Shown here: positions 52,992-54,639 of the stretch, piece by piece | Layout: every line of letters starts with the position of its first letter | Position numbering within the stretch: position 1 is the first letter of the stretch | Assembly: GCA_010909165.1 (NCBI GenBank) | Contig: MU008162.1 | Location: 1,116,001-1,180,000, forward strand | Source of the DNA: Anthoceros angustus | Taxonomy: Eukaryota > Plantae > Anthocerotophyta | Direction of reading: 5' to 3' | Length of the DNA: 64,000 bases | Notes under the pieces: generated by a model | Seen by the model: only the letters and a program-made list of their open reading frames with translations | What the model was told of the DNA's origin: nothing | Databases searched by the model: none | Position numbers and translations under genes: made by a program

Positions 52992-54639
52992 ATCTTCGTA
53001 GCTCTCTATGAGCTGTCTTCACCTCCTCCCCGGCCAATCTCAGGTCACGGGGTTATATCCCTGGGCTTCCCAACCTTAACCCCTTCTAGGAAGGGGTGTG
53101 AACCCCTTTCCCTCTGGGAAGAGGTGGAGAAGGCCAAAAAATTGAACCTCATTCTCATCACCCTTGCGAAGAACCTGAATTGTGAGACTTTCCAGCAGGT
53201 TAGGGATCGGTACCCTTAATACAGCACTATGGAGCAGATCAGCAACTTTCAACCTGCATTCAAAAATATGGTAAGTGACATGGAAGGCAAGCACCGGACG
53301 GTCGGTGCATGTGATATGTACGATACACAATTTTGCTTGTTAGCGCAAGGTTTGTTTCCACATCTGACCATTGTAACTTTGCCATTACGTGCAGCGGGCC
53401 AATGCCTATCTCGAGTGGAGTGCACTCCCTGATAATTTCAAGGAACATGTTTTGAAAGCCAAAGCTTGGAGGATAATGGCAGATGAGCAGCGACAATTGT
53501 TGGAGGACTCTAGTTCCGAAAAGTTAAAGACTTTCAGGGATAATGCCGGGAGATCCTGGAGGGTAGGTATAGTATGTGGTAACATCGTGCAGTTGGCTCA
53601 GTTTCTAGAACCTCGTCCGTATGCCATGATCCTATTGGACTTGCCTTGAGAGTTGAATTTGGATGCAAACTCCAGGGAGTATGACACGCGGTTCTATCGT
53701 GAGGAATTTGAGAAGATCATAATGACATTACAGGGCATCACATGGTTTTCGAGTCGTGGTATTCCATTTGCCTGATGATATATCCATGGTATGTGAAGTC
53801 TTGCTTGCAGCATGTAAAGGTGGTGTCACGTCCTGCTTCTGGCACAAAACTAATGTGATGGCCCCCTCAACAAATAAGCTGTATGATGCAGGGGATTACA
53901 TGACCATGGGCACAGGTTCTTTGAAGCAGGATTGTCTGCCTCAGCATTTCTCCCTTAGTGCAACAAAAGATGTTATGAATGACGGCAGAGGGTTGACAAC
54001 TTGCTTTGTTAAGAAGGCTGTGGAACATAAGCTGTGTTACAACACAGCTGATGATAGGGTGATTTCTCCGTACCATAAGCCCATTAGGTTGTTGAGGAAG
54101 TTGATTGAGCTGTACACAATGGAAGGCGAGTGGATCCTAGATGGATGTGCAGGATTTGGTTCAGGTATGGTAGCAGCCCTCAAGTCTCAATGTTATTTCG
54201 ATAGACGTGGATCCCAGAGCAATGCAATCCATGGGTTTACGGCTCAATACGTTGGACAACTGGCCAAGCGGCGAGGAGGAAGTGGGAGACATTGACGGCT
54301 ATGCAGCACCCAAGACGTGCAGCACAGAGCCAATGGTGAACACTATCGCAGGTGGCCGAGGTTGTTTTGTGGGTCTGAAGCGGCGGGCAAACAAGAAGAT
54401 GCGATGCACAGTTGAAGGCGTGTCAGATCCACTTACGATTGGTGTTGTAGGACATGTGTCGACAAGTGCAGGAGAAGATAGTGAGAAAGGTGCAGCGGAC
54501 ATTGGCGAGATGGGTGGAGAATAGGGTTTTGCTGCAACATTGGGGGGGGCGAAGGGGGGTTGATGGAGAAGAGGTCCTTCCCCTTGCATCGGCGACTGAG
54601 AAGTATGATAGACTGATTGACTCTCCAGACAGCGCCTAG
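52992..54639 (+). pseudogene. Decayed intron-containing beta-class N6-adenine/N4-cytosine DNA methyltransferase (N6_N4_Mtase-like) gene
   Basis: Motif IV MILLDLP* (53638-53649), CFWHKTN, HKPIRLLRKLIELYTMEGEWILDGCAGFGSGMVAALK (motifs X/I, ~54074-54183), LNVISIDVDPRAMQSMGLRL (motif II, shifted frame). Phase-0 intron 53271-53394 (GTAAGT...CTGAC...TGCAG). Stops at 53217 and 53647; frameshifts ~53750 and ~54183. Confidence 0.8.

Follow-up and report, generated by a model that had tools for sequence, protein, structure and literature searches.

The window analyzed here is a 64,000-nucleotide stretch of the Anthoceros angustus genome (Anthocerotophyta; GenBank assembly GCA_010909165.1, contig MU008162.1, positions 1,116,001 to 1,180,000, forward strand). 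Judged by its sequence, the segment 53124–54524 on the plus strand holds the pseudogene of a DNA amino-methyltransferase-like domain of the beta class (N6_N4, PF01555), broken over three reading frames. Its parts, numbered from the first letter of the window, are as follows:

53124–53270 (+), linker exon of a ParB-methyltransferase gene, 5′-truncated; from tblastn and alignment with relatives
53271–53394 (+), phase-0 GT-AG spliceosomal intron (GTAAGT...GCAG), with CTGAC at 53364–68
53395–53742 (+), frame-1 part, with pre-catalytic helices and the motif IV region (LLDLP); from tblastn with relatives P0001, P0006, and P0037 and from alignments
53743–53746 (+), first frame change (+1), between a high-scoring segment pair ending at 53742 and the next starting at 53747
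53747–54178 (+), frame-2 part, with the W-x-K-x-N block (CFWHKTN), PYHKP, and S-adenosylmethionine (SAM)-binding motif I (LDGCAGFGSG); from tblastn, HMMER, and Pfam
54179–54188 (+), second frame change (+1), between a segment pair ending at 54178 and the next starting at 54189
54189–54524 (+), frame-3 part, with motif II (NVISIDVD), a conserved EPMVN..GGRG block, and a low-complexity tail; from tblastn

P0001, an intact relative of 446 amino acids, was colinear in tblastn with 53377–53742, 53747–54178, and 54189–54380, and the joint E-value of 4.9e-78 is far beyond chance, indicating that the pseudogene is real. The original prediction, a note made from the letters of this DNA, had stitched pieces from three frames into the beta-class order of motif IV, CFWHKTN, motifs X-I, and motif II, and this order is seen in 53395–54521 with P0001 colinear. 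Over the frame-2 part, P0001 is 52% identical across 144 amino acids (tblastn), and it was the best of 35 proteins recovered at E ≤ 1e-3 when the middle open reading frame (ORF) was compared exhaustively with 1.84 billion representatives (HMMER, E = 9e-41). A protein homology search with P0001 itself returned three proteins. The window pieces were searched separately; a reading joined by an X at each break was used for alignment and tree alone.

The linker exon is matched by P0036 and P0037 at 52–56% identity (tblastn) and by an exon ORF of the related locus L006 at 62% identity (E = 8e-18), the matches spanning 53124–53270/53306. Because these three match from 53124, the exon must begin by that position. 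Upstream of about 53090–53124, including 52992–53123, no homology to the family was seen. At the other end, frame-3 homology is firm to 54380 (P0001) and weak to 54518 (P0004) in tblastn, and the frame stops at 54522–24. Extension to 54639 requires a further frame change, and the best match of that tail to the tails of relatives (18.9 bits) is at chance level (shuffled median 16.5, 95th percentile 20.4). The extent first proposed, 52992–54639, is thus upheld for its core and given up at both ends, and ATG 53229 is not the start of the exon. G8 and G6 runs at 54543–54560, just past the frame-3 stop, form a site prone to real or assembly insertions and deletions, which leaves the true 3′ end of the gene uncertain.

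Several defects separate the copy from its intact relatives. A TGA (53647–53649) directly follows LLDLP in the frame-1 part, and an in-frame TAA (53217–53219) in the linker exon is the second stop of the fragment. The first frame change lies in a T4 run and is reducible to a one-nucleotide insertion or deletion plus a three-codon length difference; the second is likewise reducible to a one-nucleotide insertion or deletion plus an in-frame length difference. In addition, the Gly that follows motif IV has become Glu, and PYQKP has lost its nearly invariant Gln to His. The observed/expected CpG ratio of the fragment (0.57) shows no useful difference from the window average (0.65).

The intron, with its phase-0 GT-AG boundaries and CTGAC, is as originally described, and its position is common to L001, L002, and L006. 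The window junction reads ..FKNM (53270) / GTAAGT...GCAG / RANAY.. (53395). Interruption at the same codon is observed in L002 (..FGGL / GTAAGT...GCAG / RVRS.., intron 5199–5310), in L001 (..FANV / GTGAGT...CCAG / RVRS..), and in L006 (..FKNI / GTACGT). L005, from sequencing run SRR33208242, is identical to L002, from run SRR33208241, minus three GT-AG segments (L002 2642–2736, 3330–3426, and 5199–5310), the third of which is the homologue of the window intron. The conserved position, together with removal of the homologous intron in L005, supports the window intron, and the conservation of a phase-0 intron indicates a long eukaryotic history of the gene.

The middle ORF, the largest piece in the window, matched PF01555 N6_N4_Mtase at E = 1.1e-4 and 22.7 bits, below the Pfam gathering score of 26.7, which is passed by P0001 (30.0), P0010 (39.9), and P0040 (33.0). 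Pfam gave no match for the remaining pieces, for 52992–53216, or for the 54454–54636 ORF, and phmmer of the 179-amino acid ORF against the PDB gave nothing relevant. The permuted motif order is present in the window frames, with CcrM aligning over profile positions 156–288. SAM-binding motif I (D-x-F/C-x-G-S-G) and acidic motif II are present as LDGCAGFGSG and NVISIDVD, in columns conserved among the relatives. A 19-member family profile matched the solved enzymes TTHA0409 (2e-11), M.BceJIV, CcrM, DpnA/M1.HpyAVI, M.MboIIA, rotifer N4CMT, and M.RsrI. The fold was evaluated on relative P0001 only, whose AlphaFold model has a mean predicted local distance difference test score (pLDDT) of 64 with a core above 90; Foldseek matched this model to M.MboIIA (2.4e-13), CcrM, M.BceJIV, M.RsrI, M1.HpyAVI, N4CMT, and M.PvuII, at E-values of 2e-13 to 4e-11. 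Family profile and P0001 fold thus both match beta-class DNA methyltransferases best, as expected for the N6_N4-type identity proposed at the outset. The label "bacterial-type" given to the gene was too simple: its closest kin belong to eukaryotes, contain introns, and include a ParB-like domain in the same gene. The MT-A70 type (METTL3/MTA1) was considered and rejected: MTA1c and METTL3 appeared at Foldseek E-values of 2e-7 to 9e-7, about six orders weaker, and no MT-A70 Pfam match was found in the window pieces or the relatives.

In the tree, the window reading groups with P0001–P0004, P0037, and P0038 at 100/99 support, with P0005 as sister to this clade; identity between the window and clade members is 42–47%, with 48% at best in the alignment underlying the tree. 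P0038 is the corresponding gene of L006, so that the retained part of the window copy groups with a gene of known surroundings and its kin, and shares their intron position. Intact copies, whose existence elsewhere had been suggested as possible, are represented by the uninterrupted 446-amino acid ORF of P0001 in L001 (604–2248), with an intact linker exon and an intron (GTGAGT...CCAG) ahead of it, and by the spliced L005. To judge from the uninterrupted ORF and linker exon, the organism sequenced in run SRR33208241 holds a member of the window's clade that appears intact. Beyond the clade, at least 12 paralogues of P0010 occur in Chara braunii.

Motif IV departs from the canonical (D/N/S)-P-P-(Y/F/W) throughout this group. 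The window reads D-L-P-stop-E, and all five close relatives covering the motif (P0001, P0002, P0005, P0037, and L006), that is, the clade members concerned and P0005, read D-L-P-R-G. More distant kin carry D-I-P-Y-G or D-F-P-Y/C-G (P0009, P0014, P0024, P0010, and Chara proteins). Among the latter, Chara braunii P0041, P0042, and P0046 have D-F-P-C-G instead of D-F-P-Y-G, from which it follows that the aromatic residue was lost more than once in the family. Since every close relative has Arg at the position of the window stop, CGA to TGA is its simplest origin; the proposed descent of the TGA from a Trp codon (TGG) is not sustained, and a DPPW/DPPY-like catalytic motif cannot be assumed. With Arg in place of the aromatic residue and the SAM-binding motifs kept, catalysis in the window's clade is doubtful, and the pattern would fit either an altered pocket or a role in binding SAM and DNA without catalysis. 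The closest structural neighbours of the P0001 model are N6-adenine enzymes, with N4-cytosine enzymes close behind (Foldseek). The predicted lean toward adenine, from Asp at the first position of motif IV, is an argument from sequence. D-L-P-R-G is kept across a well-supported clade whose members are otherwise about 30–50% identical, including intact, apparently spliced copies (runs SRR33208241/2). It is possible, though rather doubtful, that the pattern marks a working transposon protein of land-plant-like hosts, which would either methylate with an unusual pocket or serve as a non-catalytic SAM-binding module aimed at the element's DNA by the ParB-like domain.

The surroundings of the intact relatives indicate what kind of gene has been truncated in the window. 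There the gene encodes an N-terminal ParB-like domain, a helical linker, and the C-terminal methyltransferase domain, and it contains GT-AG introns. L006 (9 kb, of the window's clade) carries a 619-amino acid DUF7869 protein on the minus strand and the methyltransferase gene divergently on the plus strand. Along the plus strand of L006 come first an ORF that contains a GG-x-HS-x-x-AR block and shares 36% identity with the N-terminal region of P0010, then the linker exon, and then the methyltransferase exons. In L004 (8.9 kb, from a metagenome), the corresponding genes are as follows:

378–2120 (−), DUF7869 gene
6015–8384 (+), P0010, the ParB-methyltransferase gene

Both genes of L004 are enclosed by a pair of terminal inverted repeats (TIRs) of 28 nucleotides at 20–47 and 8844–8871, 96% complementary. 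From its sequence, L004 is read as a complete or near-complete TIR element. Imperfect similarity extends about 12 nucleotides beyond its TIRs (GCTG-GATAT), so that neither the exact ends of the element nor its target-site duplication is fixed. The DUF7869 proteins of L004 and L006 share 30% identity (E = 2e-55), a divergence similar to that of the methyltransferase genes, which fits a two-gene unit evolving together.

The GG-x-HS-x-x-AR block is present in P0010, the Chara proteins, and L006. When residues 95–300 of P0010 were modeled with Chara and L006 homologues, the top 37 PDB matches of the model were all Noc, ParB, KorB, PadC, or sulfiredoxin (best Foldseek E = 7e-4). Between the two genes of L004, at 5676–5941, lies a palindromic repeat array with the core GACCGATAGCGATATACG and its complement, with arms of 34–52 nucleotides at 79–91% complementarity. 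These palindromes are candidate binding sites for the ParB-like domain.

Taken together, these observations are best explained, with a probability of roughly 80%, by descent of 53124–54524 from the accessory gene of a TIR DNA transposon family, of which about the final 60%, the 3′ portion, is left in a non-functional state. In intact elements, this cargo gene would lie divergent from a DUF7869 transposase-like gene, both between TIRs. The ParB-like domain would bind repeated palindromic sites inside the element and thereby bring the methyltransferase domain to the element's own DNA, the outcome being DNA marking with N6-methyladenine (6mA) or N4-methylcytosine (4mC), or another role in the window's clade. 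The window copy cannot work, as its 5′ half (promoter and ParB part), a transposase gene, and TIRs are missing and the remainder has two nonsense codons and two frame changes.

Several results weigh against this explanation. No homology to DUF7869, the ParB region, C48, or other neighbouring ORFs of the relatives was detected by tblastn beyond 53124–54520 in the whole 64 kb, a repeat search found no credible TIR or target-site duplication around the fragment, and the flanks share nothing with those in L001–L004 (tblastx). With no transposon mark in the window, the argument for carriage comes from the relatives only. For the relatives themselves, neither Pfam nor PDB profile searches detected ParB; the ParB fold of the N-terminal domain is likely according to a medium-confidence model (pLDDT 68) with modest Foldseek E-values. 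DUF7869 would be a Sola1-superfamily transposase by analogy with a published element (PMC12477816), and no paper on DUF7869 was found. Any methyl transfer to N6-adenine or N4-cytosine in this family is putative. L005 is most simply, though not necessarily, read as a spliced transcript. Carriage by a methyltransferase-bearing transposon family, as suggested for the locus, is supported in the relatives, which are TIR-element cargo in L004 and L006, and only by way of them for the window, which lacks transposase, TIR, and ParB part.

The breakpoint on the left bears on how the fragment came to lie here. It adjoins a Ty1/Copia remnant:

52430–53040 (approximate, −), 3′ remnant of Ty1/Copia pol, RNase H to C-terminus, identified by eye (..CDADW.., ..SWSSKK..SSTE.QY.., ..LLTKALP..)

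This remnant, already reported beside the gene, was again recognized by eye from its RNase H and C-terminal signatures and has a weak lead (0.91) in Atlas to a "Polyprotein" cluster of streptophytes; it has no Pfam match. The point where it meets the methyltransferase fragment is an internal breakpoint and not a long terminal repeat. The remainder of a minus-strand Copia element is expected rightward, where the fragment begins, so the junction joins two internal points. The simplest history would be a single deletion that removed the 5′ parts of both Copia pol and the cargo gene. An improbable alternative is that the fragment was never in a complete element at this site and arrived by transduplication, capture by another element, or rearrangement. 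An internal gene piece alone, joined to an internal point of Copia pol, would be expected in that case, as would flanks that match nothing in the relatives. However, a single deletion that took away the 5′ parts of the two neighbours accounts for this junction too, and the repeat search found no ends of a capturing element around the fragment. The retained intron shows that the fragment is not a retrocopy.

Somewhat less probable still is a host gene for a domesticated amino-methyltransferase, of the DN4MT1 or N4CMT kind, whose relic lies by chance among transposon debris. The conserved spliceosomal intron, the eukaryotic relatives, and the lack of a transposon hallmark in the window would all fit such a gene. 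Against it, the relatives are DUF7869-linked, inside TIRs, and multi-copy in Chara, the truncated locus runs directly into a Copia remnant, and DN4MT1 has TSPPY (bioRxiv 10.1101/2021.02.12.428880) where the window's clade has DLPRG. The earlier comparison with Marchantia DN4MT1a/b and bdelloid N4CMT (8s9m) is accordingly valid at the level of the PF01555 superfamily, N4CMT being among the structural and profile matches, and fails at motif IV, the TSPPY of DN4MT1 being absent from the window's clade. DN4MT1 and N4CMT are host genes with a (T)SPPY-type motif and demonstrated activity, whereas the present family is transposon cargo in the relatives and has Asp first in motif IV.

Very unlikely is a truncated gene that is still functional, with frame changes due to assembly errors. 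Each frame change is indeed reducible to a single-nucleotide insertion or deletion, one of them in a T4 run, but two nonsense substitutions (TAA 53217, TGA 53647), the loss of the 5′ half and any start, and the Gly to Glu and Gln to His replacements around motif IV and in PYQKP are not accommodated. Recent bacterial or phage DNA, whether contamination or fresh horizontal transfer, is suggested by the mostly prokaryotic membership of PF01555 and is effectively refuted by a GT-AG intron whose position is conserved in eukaryotic relatives, the plant genes and Copia remnant on the same contig, the closest kin being Chara proteins and eukaryote-like contigs, and the mere 35 matches among 1.84 billion representatives.

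If the fragment is the remainder of a transposon accessory gene, its nearest published counterpart by gene design is Sola1-1_Ec32 of Ectocarpus, a 21.5-kb element with a gene of 1104 amino acids encoding ParB and an N4C/N6A methyltransferase opposite the transposase (Genome Biol 2025, PMC12477816). Similarly, L006, and L004 inside its TIRs, combine a ParB-fold and a PF01555-type domain in one protein on the strand opposite a transposase-like gene. The comparison is by gene design alone, and the hosts here are streptophytes (Chara, plant-like contigs, and this plant genome). Unlike in Sola1-1_Ec32, motif IV of the window's clade is D-L-P-R-G instead of aromatic, and the window copy is a dead 3′ fragment. 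ParB-fused adenine methylases of phage origin had earlier been catalogued in chlorophytes and chytrids by Iyer et al. (2011 and 2016, PMC4738411). Red-algal (Bostrychia) Plavaka elements encode PAG2 (N6-adenine methylase and SET) and PAG3 (ParB and 2-oxoglutarate oxygenase) and have inverted-repeat arrays beside the ParB-type accessory gene (bioRxiv 10.1101/2025.02.11.637652). Plavaka resembles the present family as a DNA transposon with ParB-like and DNA-modifying modules, and the L004 array at 5676–5941 is comparable; in contrast, Plavaka belongs to another transposon superfamily, splits the domains over two genes, and has different enzyme partners. With M.MboIIA (1g60), CcrM (6pbd), M.BceJIV, M.RsrI, M1.HpyAVI/DpnA, and M.PvuII, the family shares the fold, the permuted order, and motifs I and II, but identity to the solved beta-class enzymes is 13–19%. 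Further differences from these enzymes are Leu, Ile, or Phe for the first Pro of motif IV in the family, Arg for the aromatic residue in the window's clade, eukaryotic introns, and extra N-terminal domains.

The locus is therefore a 5′-truncated fossil of a kind of transposon cargo published from algae, a further record and not a new thing. As a truncated and mutated fossil it matters little alone, and its value lies in the detail that it adds on the family. The Arg that replaces the aromatic residue in the plant-side clade bears on the question whether these proteins deposit 6mA or 4mC in the first place. Should intact members be active, streptophytes would have a source of DNA methylation other than 5-methylcytosine that is encoded by transposons. 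If the tentative reading of D-L-P-R-G as the mark of a working protein is true, there would be an epigenetic device, carried by a transposon, of a kind so far undescribed in land plants, with the window copy as its fossil. No paper on ParB-methyltransferase elements in land plants was found in our literature collection, which is incomplete.

L002, a 16-kb contig, holds a ParB-methyltransferase pseudogene and an ORF homologous to L004 2377–3531, possibly a third conserved gene of the element. It further carries an Ulp1/C48 peptidase gene (E = 5e-45) and the start of a RecQ-like helicase. Its side ORFs are located as follows:

251–1666 (−), side ORF of L002
11918–12892 (−), side ORF of L002
15394–15961 (+), side ORF of L002

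Elsewhere in the window, three host genes were identified by Pfam, the ornithine carbamoyltransferase being the nearest confirmed one to the fragment:

43917–45269, C-terminal exon of a CHX17-family cation/H+ antiporter
57579–57989, N-domain of an ornithine carbamoyltransferase
63058–63999, SDP1-like patatin lipase

The segment 50500–51900 is very GC-rich and consists of degenerate CCGCCCG-type short repeats. The long ORFs on its two strands, which reach 227 amino acids and have a high content of Arg/Gly/Ala or of Pro, seem to be by-products of these repeats.

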